Source of the DNA: Klebsormidium nitens
Lineage: Eukaryota; Plantae; Klebsormidiophyceae
Assembly: GCA_000708835.1 (NCBI GenBank)
Contig: DF237019.1
Location: 124,001 to 188,000, forward strand
DNA: 64,000 nucleotides
Reading direction: 5' to 3'
Shown here: positions 17,418 through 50,103 of the stretch, piece by piece
Layout of the letters: each line of letters begins with the position of its first letter
How positions within the stretch are numbered: position 1 is the first letter of the stretch
Program-made: the position numbers and the translations under genes
The notes under the pieces: model-generated
What the model saw: the letters and a program-made list of their open reading frames with translations, nothing else
Database searches by the model: none
Told to the model about the DNA's origin: nothing

Positions 17418-20400
17418 GTGTACACTGGGGCCGGCATATCCACTTCCGCTGGCATCCCTGACTATCGGGGCCCAGCGGGGGTATGGACCTTGAAGGCCCA
17501 AGGCAACGACCGCCACCTGTCGCCTACACACAGGTCAGCATTCCTAACCCACCCCCTTCTAACCCCCACTCAGATTCCCACTCTCCAATTCTCCAAGAAA
17601 GTCTCCACTTCCGTAAACGTACTTCAAAACGTCTGTGGTGAATCTGGGCTAGGAGGGCGGAATTTCACAGGCTGCCATCATCCGCAAAGACTATCAAATG
17701 CCAAAACGGGCACACATGCTGGTTCTTTATGTTACAGGGGTTTGGAAATTGTTGGAGATTTGCAAACGCTCGTGAGAAACCATATTTCCAGAGTCGGCTC
17801 ATGCCCTTGAACCGTTTGACCAGCAGGATCCGTGCTCTCGTTTGAGACTGAAAGAAAAGTCAGACGAAGCCCCCTGGGAAACTTTCAGGCCACCACTAGA
17901 GGGGCGGTAAAGATGGACGGCTCGGAGGAGCCAGATATTGCGGAAATGCGTGCAACTCTCTCGGCCGATACCAGGAGAACCCCTGGATGAAGAAAACGCC
18001 TTTTCGTTTGAATAGTCCTTCGCGTCTGGGCTGCCCCCCTGCGCTGATCAATGGTTCTCTCTGACGTGCTTGGGTCTCTCTATTCTTGGAGAAGTCCGAA
18101 CCTATTGGCTGTCTCCTATCTGCTACGAAGCCCTGCGGGAGCATCCCGTCAGCCTGAAACCCCTCTCGAAAAGAACGACGAACCTCGTGGAGCATCCGCC
18201 TTCCGTACCTTTCAAATCTTCTCGTTGACGTAAGAACCCCGTGAATGTGAACAGGTCACCCCCAGCTGCGCCTGTCGCTGGCTCTTAATGCACTTTGGTT
18301 TCGGCCCTGGAAATTGCTCATGCCCTTGAGCATTTTCCAAATGTCCCGACACTCTTTTCGGAACAAAGATCCATACCTTTTCGATCCAGAATTTGGAAGC
18401 TCCTAACCAAACTCTAATCTCTCTAACCATGACAAACACCACCTCCGCACCCGTACCCACCCCAAACCCCTGAATTAACTTGCCCGTCCGAGTCAAGAAG
18501 TCCTACTATTCCTAAGGCTCCGGGAAATGGGAGACTCTTCTAAACCTCGTCTGGTTTAAGCAGGTCCGCCCTAGCTACGCCCACCGCACGCTTGCGTTGC
18601 TCGTCCAAGCGGGTTTGGTTAAGCATGTGGTAACCCAAAACGTGGACGGCCTGCACCGCGTGAGCGGGGTGCCCCGAGAGAAGCTTAGCGAGTTACACGG
18701 GAACGCTAGGATGGAGAGGTGCGCGGAATGCGGAAGGGAGTACCTCCGGGACTACGCGACTTGGAGCGTGACGGCCGGCACTGGTGAGAGGCTTAAGCTT
18801 TGGCGGGGCTTTTTACGCGTGATTTGGGCTTCGTTTTTTCGGTTAAGCAGGTTCTCTGTGCAGGACGGCCCAACTCCTGAGTTGATCTTTTCCGGGTTAA
18901 GCAGTTTTGCTGTGCAGGACGTCCACAATCCTAAGGTCGAAAGTTAGCGTTGTGCAAACTTCATTGCTCAGATCTTGGGAGATCTAGGGATTCCTCGAGA
19001 CTTGAGAGGGTTTGAGCTTCTGTGTGTATGTTCAAGAGTAGTTATTTAGGCTTTCCAGGGCGGTTTGCCCGTTGTTTCGAATGTGAAGGGTATGGTATCG
19101 ACAATCAGGATCTCTCTGCATTTTTGAGGGCCCAGTAAGAAAGAGTCCGCAGATGGAAACGAAGGTTTGACTAACCTTGCAAGACGCAGAAGAGATTGCA
19201 ATCAAACGGACTATCTTCGATCCGGCAGTAGCCTCCTCTCCTACAAGCTGGGTCCGACGATTCAGACTCAATATCTTCTGATACATGAACGCTTTCGTGT
19301 TAAGGAATTAGAGGTCGGCCGTTCACGGAATCGCGGAAAGATTAGCCGTAATCTGAAACGGTGGCTTTGGTTACATTTCTCTGACTTGTTCAACGGCTAA
19401 TCAACCTCATGTGCCCCGTAACTTGCCCCTTGGCGAACTGACGATCTGCCGCTGAATTTCGGAGATCATATGCTCAGCAATCTGTTCCGGCGAACAGCAG
19501 GCCGGCATCGCTGCCAAAAGGTCGCCGGCACCCCAAGTCCTTGCTGACAACGTGTCACCTTCTTTTCAGGTTCTACGTCGGCGTCCGCACGGGCCAAGCG
19601 ACGGCGCTCGTCCGAACGAGCCTTGCCGTTCGGAGCCTCGGCTCATGCGTCCGGAGAAAGCATCCCGTCCGAACGCCCGACCCTGCCGTTCGAGAGTTTC
19701 CTGCCGCGCGATTGCTTTCCACCGTCCGCTGGACGGTTAACGTCCTGCAGTTCCCAGCCGTCCAACGAATCTACGCCGCTGGACAATCCTCGACCGTCCG
19801 ACAGTTTTCGACCGTCCAACAGTCCTCTACTGTCCAACCTCTCCTCGCCGTCCGGTCACTTAGTCCAGTCCAGCACGTCTCAGGCGTCCGATCATTCCGC
19901 ACACTCATCCACTCTTCGACCGCCGATCACTCCCTACCGACCGATAGCGTCCCCCGGTCCGTTCGCTGCTCACCGTCCGATTGCTTTCACACCTTTCGAG
20001 TCCTTTCACAGGCGGTGCGAATCCCAGGGCTGCGCAGGCTCCCTTCGGCACTGCGTAACCCTGTTCAGGGAACCCCTTCCGGATTCTGCGGTGCGTTCGG
20101 CGGAGCGCGAAACCGCCCTGGCCGACGCTGCGTTGGTGCTCGGGAGCAGCTTGCGGGTAAGGTGCTTTGATTGTCCAAAATCTGAGGTGTTCGCCCATCT
20201 ATGTTTAAGATATGTTCAGTTTGGTAGCATACGTCTCTGAGTAGGGTGCTTTAGTTCGTCTGAAAGCTGATTTCGGCTGTGCGGAATTGACCATCCGACT
20301 TTTTGAAGCTCCTGATGGAAGTGGTTTGCGCTTGTCTGTCAAACTTAGCCGCCTTAACCGATTTCGCACCTCATCAAACACTCACTTCAGCTGTCCGATG

Positions 20401-21390
20401 GTTATGCTTGGTTCCTGGAACGGGCCAGATTGGGCGTCTTGTTGAGGGGCCACTTTTTCATAGTTTCTAAGACCTTAAAATGCCAAAACCCTTCAACGTC
20501 ACAAAAGTGCATAGTCTCCGCCCTTCTTGCACACACGCACTTGCGAGCGCATCTGCATTCTCAAGCAGTCGTGTGGACAGCAAGTTCTGGCTGAAAGAAA
20601 GTTGTAAGTGGACGGTGCATTGAAAAATCCTCTTGGCCTAGTAAGCCTTGGAAGCAAAGCTTATGAAAAGTCAAAGGCGCAAGGCTTTGACGTGGGCAGA
20701 ATCAACCCGGTGCTTAGACCGAGGAGCTGTCCCAACAACGTTTGCTCGCTTCAACTGGGAGGCCGTATTTTGACGCCGCAATCTGAGACCGCAATCTGAA
20801 CGGAACGGACAAATTTATTCTGGATAGGAAGCGGTTTGTGCTGTCGCGAGTTTGCTTTTGTGCCCTGGAAGACTTCGCAAAAGGATTTAGAGCGGACCAG
20901 CAACTTTTTCTTAACTCGGTTAAGCATTCTGTTGCTGTGCACTGTGGGGTTTCCTTTTCAAAATGCCCTTCCATTTCGCACGAGGTTCGGCTGCTCGACT
21001 AGGCGTGTGGAAGCAATGAACACACTACTTACAAATCCGACGTAACATAGTTTGTATTTTCCGGATCAAGCTCTCCCGATTGACCGTAAGACACGTTCGA
21101 TTGTAAGCAGTATGCCCGTGGACTTACAGGTAGCCCCCGCTTGCGACTACCCTGCTGACGTGGCAGCCTCCGGAGGAAATCTGGCCATTGTCAACCTGCA
21201 GCCCACACCTTTGGACGCTAAAGCTGACGTCATCATCAGGAGGGGATGCGACCAAGTGATGGAGTTGCTGCTTTCTCATCTGAAATCGAACGTTGGGTTG
21301 ACTTGTGGATTCCACGAACCTATGAGCGAACTCTGCGAGAGCCAGGTTTGCGGACAAGCCCTCATGGGGCTCAGTGAAGCCGCCTCTTGA
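17418..21390 (+). CDS. NAD+-dependent deacetylase (sirtuin), SIRT6/SIRT7 (class IV)-like; 5' exons unresolved
   Basis: Motifs: [24 protein letters not shown] (17418-), [13 protein letters not shown]...LSELHGN...CAEC (18564-18783), RCESQGC...LVLGSSLR (to 20156) and [12 protein letters not shown]...CDQVMELL (21130-21390). Confidence 0.9.
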
Positions 21391-22953: not shown

Positions 22954-25900
22954 TTATACGTTGTCAACCGGATGAGCATCCGACGATCTGACTGGCGGCG
23001 CACTTCTATCCGAGACGCTATTTGGCGTCTCAGCGACCTCATTCTGCTCGGACTCTACGGACATAGTTGAGAAGCTATCAAACAACTTCGAGCCGCGGGA
23101 TATTTCCGCGCCATTATCCGCGTCGGTCTGCTCGAGTGGCCGCTCGGGTGACGTGAAGAAGAATTGCTTGCCCCATGTTCCCACGTCACCGAACACGTCA
23201 GTCAGATTCCGGAGGTGAAAGCCAAACAAAATAGCGGCGACCCAGTACGCGAGTGGAACAAAGTTCCACGCACCACCGATATTGGAGATGATGTCAACCG
23301 TAGGGCTCCGTTCTCTTAGCATGGAAATGTCGTTGCTGTCTCGAAGTAGGCTCATCTGAACGGTCGCAGCGTCGACGCCTGGTAAAGGGGGCTCGACTTG
23401 GTTCAGGGTCGACATTGACGAGATGGTGTAGAACGTTCGCTGCAGAAACAAGGTGCTCAATCTGCTTCCTGACAGGCACGTTACATTTTTCAGTTCTGAT
23501 GAAATGCTTGATGACAGCAGAGCTGGGTCGGCAGCCAGTTCAATGTCACAAGTGTCTTGTTTCAGTTGGTGGAAGCTTTTGAAGCGTATTTCCTTCAACA
23601 TCAGGATGTTACTTTTTAAACCTTGAATACTTTAGTCTTTAGCTGTTATTTAGTAGCTTCACTAGGCTTAGGCTTTTGGTTGTCTTCGTCTTTTGCAGTG
23701 AAAGCAGTTCAATGTCACAAGTGATCTTGATTCTTTTCACAGCGAATTACCCTTCGAGTTAAAAACGGACGTTGAGCGGCGCTCTCCAGCATAGCACGAC
23801 AGTATTTGTATACGTCCTCGCTCAAAGACAAGACAGATAATATGAAGCAAACACAAGCAAGTTGTTAGCGAGGCAAGCTGAGCTGATCAAGAACGCTAAC
23901 GGGATCTAGCTGATAGCTGATGACAGCTTGCGAACCCACATCCGTTTTTTTTGAAACCTACCATGGTTTCTTTGCCATGCATCGCTCGACTGAGCCTTGA
24001 AACGTCCGTCACCAGGTCGAAAAAGCTAGCTTCTGACTCCTACTGAGAGCGCCGTCTTACCTCGGTTGTTGCCCCAAAGCCGACGAACAGCCATAGCTTG
24101 GACTTGATTCTCGTTTGCTTATTCTTCTTCAGCGCCAGGACATGCGTCGAGTTCCCAACCACCAGCTTCGCAAACCCGTGGCCTTGGGCTGTGTACAACG
24201 AACGTTTCTCCTCATTGGTCAACGATGATAAGCTTCTCGTGCTCAAGTCTACGCTGTGCTGCAAATCCGCGAGGAGGTCTGCTTGTGCAGTGTCGTTGGA
24301 TGAGTTGGTCGGGTAGTCATTGAACTGCCAGTGGAGGACCTTTGGGGGCTGCAGGAAAGATGAGCAAGAAAATTGAACTCAGAAAAGATGATAATAAGCC
24401 GAGATAATGATAAGGTAACCGCACCGGGACGGGTGCGGTTACTTTGGTGGTTAGGGTGGGTATGGGTTTGGAGCTGAGGTACCTTCTTGGGTTAGGTTTC
24501 GTATTGCTTGTCGGAGCCCAATATCATATCTTGGCGTATTATCATCTTTCTTGATCTAAATGAAAAATCAGGAGCTTCGATCAATCGCTTCCGTCAGTAG
24601 TTGAAACACACCTGTGCCTGCTGCACGAAACATGTCTCTCGCTTCTCGCAGCTAGTAGAGCGGAGGTGTTGTCTCCATGTATCTACAGGGAGCTGGCACA
24701 CTCAAACAAGCACAGGCATGACAAGCCGTGCAGCCTACGAAAGAAGGCTACTGAGGTACAACAAAGGACCCTTGTCGTAGCGTCACTTGATTGCCCTGCT
24801 TGCACTCCGAACCGCCGGGAAAAGAGATTGAATCGAAAGGAGGTAATCGAACGCAATTCAAGGCCGGGAAAGTGCGATCTTTTGAGAATCCACTACGCAC
24901 TCCACCTCTCCACGCGTACGCGGGCCTCCTTAAACGATGCTTCAGCTCCTGTCGTGCATGTGGACCCGTGTTGTGGACCTTATCCAAGCTGAAGTTTTAA
25001 AACTGCCCAAATATCGGGCACTGCAATTAGTAGCATTGCCGGATGCAAATTTGCAACTTCATGAGGGTTTAACAAAGTATGGCTGGAACCTGCCTTGAGG
25101 TTCCTGACGTCGTTCGTCACGTGTCCCCCAAACGACAGCGAAAAGTCTAGTGACACGTGGGGCTGCAGTATTTGCTCCGGGTCCGTTGTGCGCCGTCTTA
25201 ATTGGTTGGGGAAGTAGACGATACACCACGATTGTGGGGGAGTGACGGGCTCGCCGGCGGAGCTTCTAACGAGGTTGCTCGGTTGCAACCAGTAGAAAGT
25301 GCTGATCCTCGTGTCAGCTGATGCAGGCGAGCCTGTTTGAACGGTCGTACTGTTGCGGTCCCCCGAGATGTTGTTGCGTTCGTAGAAGTCCGGAAATTTT
25401 CCTTCCGCTCTGCGTGAGATTCAGGTCAGGAGAGAGTGAGTTCCGTCATTCTTGAGGTGGGTGCACGCATTACCTGAGGTATAGAAACATCGTGTCCTCA
25501 AAGGAAGCGAACTAGCATGTAACGGCCTGAGTGAAGGAACTGCTTTTGAATCGTGATTTCTCTGGCAATGGACATCAAAGGTCAAATTTCCACCAGCAGA
25601 GAACACGGACTGCTGTGCTGAAGGCCAGACATTACTTTCCAAACACCAACAACGGTAATGGAAGCTACTCCATGAAAGGAGGGTGCAAAACTATAATGTT
25701 GCCGCTCACAGACTAACTCCAAGATTCCTGCGCCGCAGAATGCATCGAGCTTGCTTGCCTTGCTCGCTGGTAGTTTGGTCCAAAGTTGAAGAAGAAGTAT
25801 CGGCTTGACGAGTAGAACATCTTCAAGTAGCCATAGTCCAGGGGAATGCTCGAAGGGCCCTCGAAAGAGCAAGCCGAGATGACGGGAGCCCGAAATTCGC

Positions 25901-26711
25901 TGTCCTCATTCTGGTTCATGGAGACCGATGGATGATTGTAGAAGACCAGGAACTGCATAATGGAAAGCACAATCAGAATCTTTCAACATGAGAGTTCACT
26001 TGGAGCATTGATTGCGAGTTGAGCCGCCGGATGCCAGGTGACCTGTTTGGCAAAAGTTCCATGTGAGTCATGGCAGCTCAGAAGAGAATGTGCCGTTGAG
26101 ATGACCAGAGTGAAGTAAGATGATGGCACGTCAGGAGGTAGTGGTTCTTAATGGATGCAGCCACTTTAGATTGCATGAATGGATTCCAGCAACAATGAAG
26201 CTGTGGATGCCAAAGTCAAGTGTCAGCCTGCGTTGAAGCTTTCTATGCAAATAGACAATAGGTGCAAAATTTCTCCACTTGAGGTAGAACTTAAGAGACT
26301 GCAAGAATGCATTCAGTAGGTGGTAAACGACCTCATTGGCCAAATTGCAACGAATCACCACGCTGAAAGCTGACCTGTAGGGATTGCTCGTAATGAGTTC
26401 TTTGAAATTGTTGTGCTGGTCTTTCTGGAATCTGCACAAATGACAGGACTCAACCACTAGGCTGACAGACTCAACGGTTGCTACTTTGCACAAACACGTC
26501 ACTGCATGTCTGATCGATAACTTACCGCTGAGAAAAGATATATCGAATATATCAGGAAGATGACAAGCAGAAAACCTGCAAAGTACAACCCCGCGCCGCC
26601 CCTACTCCTGCGGCTCCTTTTGTCATTTCGAAGATCCATAGTAGATGCTGCAGGATCATGAGCTGCTTTGTCTTCAGTCTGTTCTGAGGACATAGCGCCG
26701 ACGGAAGTCAT
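22954..26711 (-). CDS. Two-transmembrane protein (about 490 aa) with a large extracellular loop; PAC(TMEM206)/DEG-ENaC-like channel candidate
   Basis: Exons 26711-26526, 25952-25759, 25409-25094 (approximate end), 24348-24061 and 23439-22954 join in frame. TM1 is GLYFAGFLLVIFLIYSIYLFSAFLVF, followed by NHPSVSMNQNEDSEFRAPVISAC. TM2 is TVDIISNIGGAWNFVPLAYWVAAILFG. Several N-x-S/T sites lie in the loop. Confidence 0.65.
24382..24550. mobile_element. About 169-bp MITE-like element in an intron, with about 28-bp TIRs and a degenerate 9-bp TSD
   Basis: aaagatgataataagccgagataatgata (24384-) matches the reverse complement of tatcatatcttggcgtattatcatcttt (-24549). Flanks are ttgaactca and ttgatctaa (7/9 match). 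There is an internal 11-bp hairpin gtaaccgcacc/ggtgcggttac. Confidence 0.65.
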
Positions 26712-28718: not shown

Positions 28719-31356
28719 ATGGCTTTCCAGCCCCTCTATTGGCGCTGCATTTGCGCCCTTCTCGGGAACCTCCTGCTTAACGTATGTCTTCTGTCTTTTA
28801 TTCGGCCAATCAGTGCAGGAGCTGAAGGGTCCCGCTTGACGCGTCAGATTGGCTCAGCTTGTAACCTGAACGACGTCAATAATGCAGTCTCTTTATCGAG
28901 CCTCCCAGCCGGTCTCTGGTACTACAACATCAGTCACCCAAGCACTAATGGCTTGTGCAAGGAAGAACCAAATGCGGGTCACTCTCTTTGTGGAGTGATT
29001 GGCGCCCGTGTCTGTGAAAAGAGCAAGCAAGCAGCTTGTGCAGACCCAGCGACAAAGCCGCTGCATTCACGGGCGGATCTTGTGCTACAGAAGACACAGA
29101 TGTGCAAGGCAGCACGTGTGTTTGCTGTAACCCTGGGCAGCGATTGTAACCTGATTGTGGACTGTGAGTATGTGGACGCAAGTCGGCTGTCGACAAGGAT
29201 CCTTGTGGAAAATTCCTACTACAGTAAGCCTCCGACTGACAGCCCGAGTGCTCAGCCTGAGGCAAACCTCCTGCCAAAGGCAGGTGACGTCGTGCTGACG
29301 TCAGCATACGCGGTGGGCATCGTCAAATACGTCTGCAGCCAAGGTGGGTCTGCTCGCCCTGCACTTCTTATTCAGACTCTATCTTTTGTCGGCCGCGGGC
29401 ACTTGAAAGAACTCTGCTGCCAGTAAGTCTGGTTGCGAGGCAATTCATGCAATCAGCATGGCCCCTTGTGGCACAGCAACGAGCTGCTACACAGCTGCAA
29501 ACAAGACCCCTTTTGAAATGCACATGGCAGATGACTAGAACATCATGATTGTGGATATATAAAGATAAGTGAAGTTCATAAGCTAGGGTGGGAATTAGTA
29601 GAGCTTTGGCCGTCTCACTTCCTGCATTTGATCTCCTTTAAGACCCTTCTGAAGCTCAGATATCAATCATACTGAGAATGGAGCTATATCAAGCTTTAGT
29701 ATTTATAGGGTCTGAGCTTCTCGCAAATCTTCTCACAGGAACATTTGACAGATAGAAAGATAGTGGATTGGACTGAGTGATGGGATGATCTTCTGGACTA
29801 ACCTGGAATAAATGTATTTCCAACTCACATCATTTGAACCGTTTTAATCAGTTCTTGTTCTAGCTTCATACATGACTCTGATGTTGTGTATGGAACTGCA
29901 AGGACGCTCAACATGGTCTCAACATCAGGTCTTGCCTCCAAGATATAGCAACTTGACGGCGGAAGTACCTCGCAGGGCAGTAGTCGGAAAAGAAACACTC
30001 AGTGAATCGCTGATTATCTCCTGTTTCAAGTCAGTCAAACTATCCATCTGTAGCAGCCGAATCTGCAGATTCTATCCCAAGCTCATACTTGTGCACACGA
30101 AATCATCATCTGGACCTTATCAACGAATGCAGCAGTAAGCGCTCCAGGTATCCTCAAGAAACTCTCGTCCGACTACCAAGAATCTTGAGCTAGACTGAGT
30201 GCGAGCTCCTTACAAGCTGATTATAATGTGTTATGCTCCTTTCAGGTAGCCAGTCCCCCAGCAATGTTTCATCTGCCGCTGACCTTTACTCCAATGATCC
30301 AACATACAACCGAGTGGGCACGTATCTCAGCACAAATGAAAGCCAGTATTTCCTCTTCAACTCAAGCGGACCTTTCGCAACTAGTACCTTCAATGCCACG
30401 GCAACCATAAACTCAACCAGAGCGACAGGGAAGGTGTATCCGTCTTCGGATCTGGATGGTAAGCAAAGTCCGGCAACGACATTGGCACGTCATCTACGCT
30501 CCGTGAAGACTTAATGTATCTGTCTGACGGAGAAAGAGGGATATCAGGGCTTTTCGTGGTCATTAGAGCAGCAATTGCCGACAACCAGCTTATGGGCGCA
30601 AGAAGGCATTTCATTTTCCTGTTTTGTTTCCGATGCCCCACTTTCGCATACTTCCGCAAAAGATTGACCATAAAGGTGCGTCAAAAGTTCCTATCTGAGT
30701 AGACCTTAAGCATTGAATATCTTGAGCACCAGCGGTCAATTACTACTCCTGCCACGTTTGCTTTCAGCCAGATCCCTGACTTGATTCGGATTCGGGTTTT
30801 CTAACGATCTGGTGCAAAAACTTCCCGATCCCGATTTCTGTGCTCTGGGGTCGAGCACGCGTCGAGCTTGCACCGACTCTGCTTGCGTCTGGTGTTTGAC
30901 TACTGCTCACTTGGCCGACAACTCGGAACTAGTTTTGATCTATGTTTGATGCAATCATCGCCCACGTGAATTCCAGACCTGCATCCGTCTTCGGATCTGT
31001 CTTCACAGCACTGCTCTCTAGCTGTCCCTAGCAAACTTTTGAGCGAAAGCAAATGCAAGTTCTGTCTGCTATCCTACGGAACAGACATAAATCTTCCGTT
31101 CAATGATTCTTGTTTTTGTTTTTTATTGCCCTCAGGTCCTTACTATGGTTCCCTAGACCAGAGTTACTCAACGGCTACCGGCACGCTGGGTTTAGCTTCG
31201 GTGAGATATATCACGACGACGTCGACTTATGGCGGCCTCCTTCCCCCGTACACCACGTGCGCAAAGCTGCCCATTCCGGGTGTGGTTCAAGCGCCATTCA
31301 GCGTCCCGTTTCAGGCAAACTTCACGTTCTTCAGTGCATACACACCTCCTATCTGA
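28719..31356 (+). CDS. Secreted protein: Cys-rich N-terminal region plus DUF3455-like domain
   Basis: Exons 28719-29343, 30246-30458 and 31136-31356. Signal-like N-terminus. VVLTSAYAVGIVKYVC and RYITTTSTYGGLLPPYTTC...FSVPFQANFTFF resemble DUF3455 motifs (G.Q.Y.C; YIQR.NT.GG.AP..C; VPY.A.Y.FY). Confidence 0.65.
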
Positions 31357-50029: not shown

Positions 50030-50103
50030 GAGGATATAGCTCAGCGGTTTAGAGCTTTCGACTGCAGATCGAAGGGTCCCCGGTTCGATTCCGGGTGTCC
50101 TCT
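50030..50103 (+). tRNA. trnC-GCA: tRNA-Cys (anticodon GCA), intronless
   Basis: Acceptor GAGGATA/TGTCCTC, D-arm GCTC/GAGC, anticodon arm TTCGA-CTGCAGA-TCGAA, T-arm CCCGG-TTCGATT-CCGGG. A T-rich terminator follows. Confidence 0.95.

Follow-up and report, generated by a model that had tools for sequence, protein, structure and literature searches.

The window analysed here, a stretch of 64,000 nucleotides from contig DF237019.1 of the Klebsormidium nitens assembly GCA_000708835.1, carries the annotated minus-strand gene KFL_000700190 at positions 22954-26711. Its product, a protein of 465 aa annotated as "hypothetical protein", is present in the databases as P0001. By tblastn on the window this protein maps to five exons, which when joined translate into P0001 exactly; in the exhaustive search described below, the last exon shows 100% identity to the database protein over 161 aa. 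The stop codon occupies 22954-22956 (minus strand) and there is an ATG in frame at 26711, an exact match to the span proposed by the first-pass annotation. The start proposed there, ATG 26711, is indeed in frame, but the annotated coding sequence begins at 26639, the third in-frame ATG; with an upstream start the protein would be 24 residues longer from 26711 and 18 longer from 26693.

All exons are on the minus strand. Exon 1 (coding part 26526-26639, residues 1-38, placed by tblastn of P0001 and by translation) encodes an Arg-rich N-terminus, predicted to be cytosolic, and most of the first membrane helix, TM1. Exon 2 (25759-25952) encodes the end of TM1 (residues 39-43), the post-TM1 segment HPSVSMNQNEDSEFRAPVIS that directly follows it (residues 45-64, 25875-25934) and the start of the loop. 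Exon 3 (25094-25409) continues the loop over residues about 104-208 and carries Cys165 and the sequons N116 and N122; exon 4 (24061-24348) takes it through residues 209-304 and holds three further sequons, N223, N226 and N274. Exon 5 (22954-23439 with the stop, CDS to 22957) contributes the end of the loop, then IISNIGGAW, the pre-TM2 motif (residues 354-362, 23266-23292), which enters the second helix, TM2 itself (residues about 358-380, 23212-23280) and the C-terminal tail. The two motifs quoted in the first-pass annotation, HPSVSMNQNEDSEFRAPVIS and IISNIGGAW, are both found in P0001, at residues 45-64 and 354-362.

The intron after exon 2 is of the GC-AG type (donor AAG|GCAAGC) and, in the annotated model, the intron after exon 3 is a second one (donor AAG|GCAGGT). 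Two GC-AG introns within one gene are unusual, and here they are known from the annotation alone. For intron 3, splicing from a GT donor at 25090 to the acceptor at 24377 is also frame-compatible and would add 11 residues. An extra exon in intron 2 (25617-25474), with good AG and CAG|GTAATG sites, was considered and rejected: it falls outside the annotated protein, in an intron with no third-position GC excess. A scan against Rfam gave no match inside the gene. GC content at third codon positions is 0.667 in the CDS, compared with 0.43-0.48 at any codon position in the introns, and this excess is the pattern of the other coding ORFs in the window. Because of this codon-position contrast between CDS and introns, we take KFL_000700190 to be real coding sequence; it is a real five-exon protein-coding gene.

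The hydropathy profile of P0001 has two hydrophobic segments, one at residues 12-45 with a peak of 2.6 and one at about 358-378 with 1.5, and the product is accordingly predicted to be a two-pass membrane protein, with TM1 at residues 17-43. Between the helices lies a loop of ~314 aa with five N-glycosylation sequons (N116, N122, N223, N226 and N274) and the only two cysteines of the whole protein, C66 and C165. Within it, two short helices are predicted, at low confidence, at residues about 229-265. TM2 ends in G377-F-H-L-R381, with no Lys in or just after the helix, and is followed by an acidic, Ser-rich C-terminal tail of 85 aa. The architecture described by the first-pass annotation, two terminal helices flanking a glycosylatable loop, thus agrees with hydropathy and sequons, but the loop is ~314 aa long and not about 290. 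An even helix count, read with the positive-inside rule, would place both termini (the Arg-rich start and the acidic tail rich in Ser) in the cytosol and the ~314-residue sequon-bearing loop in the lumen or outside.

Relatives of this protein were sought in several ways. In hmmscan against Pfam-A (each exon at E<=1, P0001 at E<=10) no ASC, TMEM206, P2X, ERGIC_N or COPIIcoated_ERV profile was matched, and the sole line returned was Chitin_synth_1, at E 0.19. Solved PAC, ASIC, ENaC and P2X chains gave no match at E<=10 when the PDB sequences were queried with the whole of P0001, with three large pieces (residues 14-110, 44-352 and 300-400) or with the two motif segments (residues 42-70 and 348-384); in the control, a PDB sequence search with PAC's own 20-mer does retrieve PAC chains. 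A word-index search of 5.8 billion proteins returned P0001 alone, whether queried with the full length, with residues 20-345 at E<=10 or with the last exon for fragments. The exhaustive phmmer search of the last exon (residues 305-465) against 1.84 billion representatives returned the protein itself and two bacterial-type repeat proteins, P0002 (2627 aa) and P0003 (951 aa), which we rejected as relatives, their match running through 5-9 repeated stretches only. Residues 1-304 were covered by the word index, which is blind to relatives that share no 5-residue words with the query. A metagenome scan found no relative of P0001, and tblastn of the window found no tandem copy of KFL_000700190.

By sequence, then, P0001 is an orphan, with no detectable relative in the databases searched and no described family, although "orphan" may here mean "beyond HMMER", and distant relatives may exist according to the Atlas feature scores discussed below. 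Our verdict on KFL_000700190 is that of a lineage-restricted orphan encoding a two-pass glycoprotein, the glycosylation being predicted from its sequons. The earlier suggestion that the gene was retained in an early streptophyte is left unsupported, since the searches turned up no relative in any organism.

As no homologue was found from which to build an alignment, AlphaFold2 models were of no use: predictions made from single sequences reached a pLDDT of 38.8 for P0001 and 30.9 for the loop (residues 40-365). The ESM Atlas holds its own model of P0001, of low confidence (pLDDT 0.54, pTM 0.51), and for this model we considered the 30 clusters ranked nearest, out of 7.7 million, in the Atlas structure search. 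These neighbours are all two-helix, sheet-rich proteins: Mucoromycota clusters with no assigned family, PF27811, TMEM206, ERGIC/ERV and ASC; P2X is absent among the neighbours listed. The Mucoromycota clusters head the ranking (TM 0.49/0.48 over 312 residues, and 0.41/0.63). The PAC and ASC clusters fall in the range TM 0.38-0.54, with 0.38/0.47 over 228 residues for TMEM206 and 0.45/0.54 over 263 residues for ASC; two ERGIC_N/COPIIcoated_ERV clusters give 0.40/0.54 and 0.37/0.38, and the PF27811 cluster 0.41/0.37. Every query-side TM score is below 0.5, and as neighbours of this low-confidence model the ERV/ERGIC families and the unnamed Mucoromycota and ciliate families equal or outscore PAC and ASC. 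From these neighbours we infer that P0001 probably belongs to a class in which two membrane helices clamp a sheet-rich outer domain.

PAC, ASIC/ENaC, P2X and Erv41/46, the characterised proteins of this class, work as assemblies of several subunits, with the outer domain as the part that senses or binds. By analogy with these proteins, P0001 may oligomerise and use its outer domain for sensing or binding, and could be a lineage-specific oligomeric glycoprotein of the cell surface or the endomembranes, of the same two-helix, sheet-rich class. To the explanation as a whole (a real gene, a two-pass protein, a sequence orphan and a putative lineage-specific oligomeric glycoprotein of this architectural class) we assign a probability of roughly 0.7.

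The alternative that survives best, possible but on balance doubtful, is that P0001 belongs to a hidden, fast-evolving, eukaryote-wide family of two-pass proteins together with proteins of Mucoromycota fungi and ciliates (PF27811, Y80K_N). The three best Atlas feature clusters are Mucoromycota "transmembrane/hypothetical proteins", with scores of 0.96, 0.94 and 0.93, the top score corresponding to 220 of 256 features; a score of 0.95 is reached by shuffled proteins about once in 100. PF27811 clusters, mostly from ciliates, follow at 0.91 (197 of 256 features), and the ten best family-bearing hits all agree. The same two groups, whose members are of similar length to P0001 (about 300-530 aa), are the nearest to P0001 by predicted structure as well as by features, the Mucoromycota ranking first in the structure search and PF27811 also appearing there; feature and structure results from the Atlas count, however, as one source of evidence. 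Against this reading, the Atlas scores come with neither an alignment nor an E-value, the HMMER-based searches retrieved no such protein, and language-model features may mirror layout (two helices and a disordered tail) rather than descent. P0001 gave no Pfam hit to PF27811, although the Pfam copy searched may predate the family, and our literature search on Y80K_N found nothing. Membership in such a family would be compatible with a PAC/ENaC-like fold.

That P0001 truly shares its fold or its ancestry with PAC and DEG/ENaC channels, at great divergence, and is a trimer with a TM2-lined pore gated by protons or force, we consider unlikely. The layout is the same, two helices near the ends with a large outer domain between them, N-glycosylated in PAC and sequon-bearing, with predicted glycosylation, in P0001; and clusters of both TMEM206 and ASC are among the 30 nearest Atlas neighbours, albeit of a low-confidence model whose query-side scores all fall below 0.5 and for which ERV/ERGIC and unnamed families do as well or better. 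PAC, described as conserved in vertebrates, and ENaC have a common fold, a trimeric core with a 12-stranded beta-domain between two helices, and yet no discernible sequence similarity (PMC7904269), so that the lack of similarity in P0001 does not exclude this reading. Profile and sequence support is nevertheless nil: P0001 matches neither PF15122 nor PDB sequences of PAC (e.g. 7JNA), neither PF00858 (ASC) nor PDB sequences of DEG/ENaC proteins, and neither the Pfam profile of P2X (PF00864) nor solved P2X chains. The first-pass annotation had named a lack of profile or structural similarity to PAC/ENaC/P2X folds as what would refute its proposal; profile similarity was not found in Pfam at E<=10, and on the structural side there is a weak, low-confidence hint.

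The PAC string quoted in the first-pass annotation is exactly residues 98-117 of human PAC (7jna and others), and residues 45-64 of P0001 do align to it with no gaps, at 7 identities in 20 positions and a BLOSUM62 score of 35, which only 10 of 20,000 shuffles of the protein reached; the segment was, however, picked post hoc, and correction for the roughly 330 possible PAC windows brings p to about 0.1-0.2. Look-alikes of equal or better quality exist in unrelated enzymes: in the same post-TM1 stretch, NHPSVSMNQNED of P0001 pairs with NHPVISLKRNED of glycine decarboxylase at 13 bits, and NIGGAWNFVPL resembles LGGAWKTVPL of choline kinase. P0001 shares with PAC a His-Pro directly after TM1 (the human PAC segment starts at H98). 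The loop of PAC is roughly 200 aa long, in contrast to the ~314 aa in P0001. In PAC, the anion filter is a conserved Lys close to where TM2 ends on the cytoplasmic side, and a conserved Gly lies at the TM2 helix crossing (PMC7904269). P0001 has no Lys in TM2 and carries G377, H379 and R381 at the cytosolic end of this helix; this small and this basic residue, G377 and R381, may loosely recall the Gly and Lys of PAC, but the positions are not to be equated with those of PAC in the absence of an alignment.

Comparison with the DEG/ENaC family (PF00858; e.g. 6AVE, 6BQN) gives a similar picture. P0001 has the two-pass layout and the large outer domain, and its post-TM1 and pre-TM2 (I-G-G) motifs would, according to the first-pass annotation, loosely resemble those of ENaC. 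The hallmarks of the family are an HG motif before TM1, a Trp at the start of TM1, 11-14 cysteines in the loop and a GxS motif in TM2 (PMC9822975), and all four are missing. The N-terminus MDLRNDKRSRRSRGGAG contains no His, and the 24-residue upstream extension has AHD and no HG; TM1 (residues 17-43) contains no Trp; the two cysteines of the whole protein stand against the 11-14 conserved ones; and no G-x-S occurs in residues 350-385 (PTVDIISNIGGAWNFVPLAYWVAAILFGFHLRNLT). With these hallmarks absent, no Pfam match and no PAC, ASIC, ENaC or P2X chain at E<=10, the membership in the PAC/DEG-ENaC families that the first-pass annotation had put forward is unsupported. The likeness of P0001 to PAC and ENaC/ASIC is one of shared layout, with a weak, low-confidence structural hint, and nothing further. 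A PAC/ENaC-like trimeric pore lined by TM2, as analogy might suggest, has on our estimate a small but appreciable chance of being formed by P0001.

Considerably less probable is that P0001 is an ER-Golgi cargo receptor of the Erv41/Erv46 (ERGIC2/3) type, with helices around a luminal beta-sandwich and no channel activity. The two ERGIC_N/COPIIcoated_ERV clusters are as good neighbours in the Atlas as PAC and ASC, and the layout is alike, with both termini inside, a helix at each end and the loop in the lumen, where the sheet-rich domain of P0001 is predicted by the low-confidence model. However, ERGIC_N and COPIIcoated_ERV can usually be recognised with ease throughout the eukaryotes, and neither PF13850 nor PF07970 was matched at E<=10; Erv proteins also carry short sorting tails, unlike the 85-residue acidic tail of P0001. 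Least probable of all, if by little, is an erroneous gene model or a non-functional gene, in which the exons were joined wrongly or the gene is newly arisen or decaying, and the two-pass protein would not be produced in the form given here. In favour of this reading, the gene is a singleton with an orthologue found nowhere in the searches run, database records of the exact protein come from a single genomic contig and include no copy derived from a transcript, two of the four introns have GC donors and intron 3 has the frame-compatible GT-AG option. Against it, the third-position GC excess is clear in all exons and missing from the introns, the exon joins are in frame and stop-free, AAG|GCA, the usual context of GC donors, is present at both of them, and a single reading frame carries the two helices at its matching ends.

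PAC and DEG/ENaC channels have been characterised in animals. Outside animals, the reported DEG/ENaC homologues are confined to a few protists, namely Tunicaraptor, heterokonts and dinoflagellates, and not in the plant lineage (PMC10507113). In the literature we found no paper placing a PAC or DEG/ENaC family in the plant lineage, nor any relevant one on ENaC, PAC or P2X in Klebsormidium or on TMEM206 in algae. It is rather improbable, in our view, that KFL_000700190, the Mucoromycota clusters and the ciliate Y80K_N proteins are far-diverged members of a eukaryote-wide PAC/ENaC-fold superfamily. KFL_000700190 supplies only a candidate, an orphan gene that is well formed, with a layout that fits and a weak hint from structure. 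If such a superfamily were real, P0001 would represent, within the plant lineage, a channel architecture characterised so far only in animals. The origin of trimeric two-helix channels would, if the fold is confirmed, shift back towards the root of the eukaryotes, and the lineage ancestral to land plants would gain a candidate sensor of acid or touch.

The reading of KFL_000700190 with the best support is that of a real orphan gene, restricted to its lineage, whose product is an N-glycosylated protein that crosses the membrane twice. The ORF listing and three-frame translation show a split gene on the minus strand (window 22954-26711), and tblastn of its 465-residue database protein, P0001, placed five exons there. 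Exon 1 (26639-26526) encodes a strongly hydrophobic helix, exon 2 (25952-25759) opens with FLVFYNHPSVSMNQNEDSEFRAPVIS, two more open stretches follow as exon 3 (25409-25094) and exon 4 (24348-24061), and exon 5 (23439-22957; 161 codons) contains DIISNIGGAWNFVPLAYWVAAILFGF and is followed by the stop codon at 22956-22954. The first-pass annotation had begun the N-terminal piece at 26711, an ATG in the same frame that precedes the annotated start by 72 bases. When the five exons are joined, the translation equals P0001 exactly. The word-index search identified P0001 as a hypothetical protein of Klebsormidium nitens, named "Transmembrane protein" in UniRef; its sole record is scaffold DF237019.1 of GCA_000708835.1.

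The protein begins with a very basic N-terminus (residues 1-16, MDLRNDKRSRRSRGGA), followed by TM1, which spans roughly residues 17-43 and peaks at a hydropathy of 2.6 over 19 residues. A loop of some 314 residues separates it from TM2 at about residues 358-380 (hydropathy 1.5; ending G377-F-H-L-R381), and an acidic, serine-rich C-terminal tail of 85 residues completes the protein. The loop's sequons are N116, N122, N223, N226 and N274; its only cysteines are C66 and C165. Because there are two helices and a basic N-terminus, the positive-inside rule indicates that both termini should be cytosolic and the loop outside or luminal.

Relatives were sought by several routes, and these yielded none. 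Word-index searches, which depend on shared 5-residue words, returned only P0001 itself for each of three queries: the full-length protein, residues 20-345 (at E<=10) and the last exon, this one aimed at exon-sized fragments in unannotated assemblies. With the last exon, the C-terminal third of the protein, as query, an exhaustive phmmer search of 1.84 billion representatives recovered P0001 with 100% identity over 161/161 residues. It also returned P0002 (2627 aa) and P0003 (951 aa), which consist of many copies of a repeat of ~40 residues (...FRDDHDIRLREAMGAVNAI..YGEARDFVALERWGARLIALAE...); these were rejected as relatives, since it is solely their own repeat, in 5-9 copies, that matches last-exon residues 28-78, and they exemplify how repeat proteins give false matches in an exhaustive search. 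A metagenome scan confirmed no candidate relative, and tblastn of P0001 found no second copy in the window.

AlphaFold2 run without homologues gave a mean pLDDT of 38.8 for the whole protein, confident only at the two helices, and 30.9 for the loop alone. The ESM Atlas has its own model of this very sequence (pTM 0.51, pLDDT 0.54). In language-model features, clusters of Mucoromycota "transmembrane proteins" score highest (0.96, 0.94 and 0.93), and PF27811 (Y80K_N) clusters stand at 0.91, with 197/256 features. The structural neighbours of the Atlas model (TM-scores by query/by the neighbour's row) include Mucoromycota clusters without a family (0.49/0.48, 0.41/0.63, 0.44/0.44), a PF27811 cluster (0.41/0.37), a TMEM206 cluster (0.38/0.47), an ASC (DEG/ENaC) cluster (0.45/0.54), two ERGIC/ERV clusters (0.37/0.38, 0.40/0.54) and a partial match to a Kelch-type protein; no by-query score reaches 0.5, and confidence in the model is low. 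Judged by these neighbours, the protein resembles the class of two long helices with a sheet-rich domain; they do not discriminate between a channel (PAC, ASC), a cargo receptor (Erv41/46) and uncharacterised families. Shared descent with the Mucoromycota/ciliate clusters, to which the feature scores point, is judged less likely than not; it is compatible with a PAC/ENaC-like pore.

That P0001 forms a PAC/ENaC-like trimeric pore, as the first-pass annotation had proposed, is unlikely. The underlying observation holds in all its parts (gene pieces, two TM segments, glycosylatable loop and motifs), and the PAC segment given there is exactly human PAC 98-117, as checked against 7JNA and five other PDB sequences. 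The best ungapped place for the PAC 20-mer in P0001 is residue 45, with 7/20 identities and a score of 35 that only 10 of 20000 shuffles attained; because it was a post hoc choice from ~330 PAC windows and several candidate families, its corrected significance is marginal. Pfam profiles matched none of seven pieces searched singly, and at E<=10 the whole protein had no ASC, TMEM206, P2X or ERGIC match. With phmmer against all PDB sequences (E<=10), neither whole P0001, nor residues 14-110, 44-352 and 300-400, nor the motif segments 42-70 and 348-384 alone returned a PAC, ASIC, ENaC or P2X chain. What did appear were NHPSVSMNQNED...YGYLKMF against human glycine decarboxylase NHPVISLKRNED...WAYIKMM (13 bits) and NIGGAWNFVPL against choline kinase LGGAWKTVPL, clearly chance matches that look no worse than the PAC/ENaC motif matches. 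DEG/ENaC channels typically show an HG motif ahead of TM1, a Trp where TM1 begins, GxS in TM2 and 11-14 conserved cysteines in the loop (PMC9822975); P0001 has none of these four. Since every sequence-level test run was negative, we place P0001 in neither family, and the channel reading has less support than a family match or a confidently predicted fold would lend it. PAC and ENaC themselves have a common fold with no recognisable sequence likeness (PMC7904269), so a missing sequence match does not by itself argue against that fold. The same paper describes PAC as a channel conserved in vertebrates, and for DEG/ENaC, PMC10507113 reports non-animal homologues in Tunicaraptor, heterokonts and dinoflagellates; our literature search found no paper with either in Klebsormidium or the plant lineage.

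An Erv-like cargo receptor, with two helices around a luminal sheet-rich domain, would share the general layout of P0001, whose Atlas model has ERGIC/ERV clusters among its neighbours; given no ERGIC match in Pfam at E<=10, we consider this reading very improbable.

Third-codon-position GC is 0.667 in the coding sequence, versus 0.43-0.48 in the four introns, whichever position is taken, and a similar excess is seen in other clear coding ORFs of the window. Because this excess is absent from the introns, the exons are taken as real coding sequence, and a wrong or non-functional gene model is highly improbable, even with introns 2 (25410-25758, donor AAG|GCAAGC) and 3 (24349-25093, donor AAG|GCAGGT) annotated as GC-AG; introns 1 and 4 are GT-AG. 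Intron 3 has a frame-compatible alternative, a GT donor four bases downstream (25090) with an acceptor at 24377, which would add 11 residues. Within intron 2, an open stretch (25474-25617, minus strand) is flanked by a good acceptor (CCTTCAG|) and a good donor (CAG|GTAATG); its phase would fit a GT donor at 25718, and it could serve as an alternative exon. It was set aside, being absent from the annotated protein and lying in an intron without the GC excess. Intron 3 also holds a 35-nt inverted repeat (24372-24406 and 24527-24561, 80% complementary, 120 nt between arms), which on the transcribed strand closely precedes the exon 4 acceptor, and intron 4 a perfect 19-nt direct repeat (23536-23554 and 23705-23723, 169 bases apart). 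On the opposite strand lie a SIR2-family (PF02146) gene at about 19954-21390 (+), just downstream of the 3' end, and, upstream, a 225-residue product without any Pfam family at about 29100-29640 (+); both extend past the locus examined and were called on the public contig. The sole Rfam match in the window is a tRNA gene at 50030-50103 (+) (RF00005, 65 bits).

As the product of an orphan gene of this architecture, P0001 would be expected, by analogy with all characterised members of the architectural class, to form oligomers and to use its outer domain for sensing or binding.
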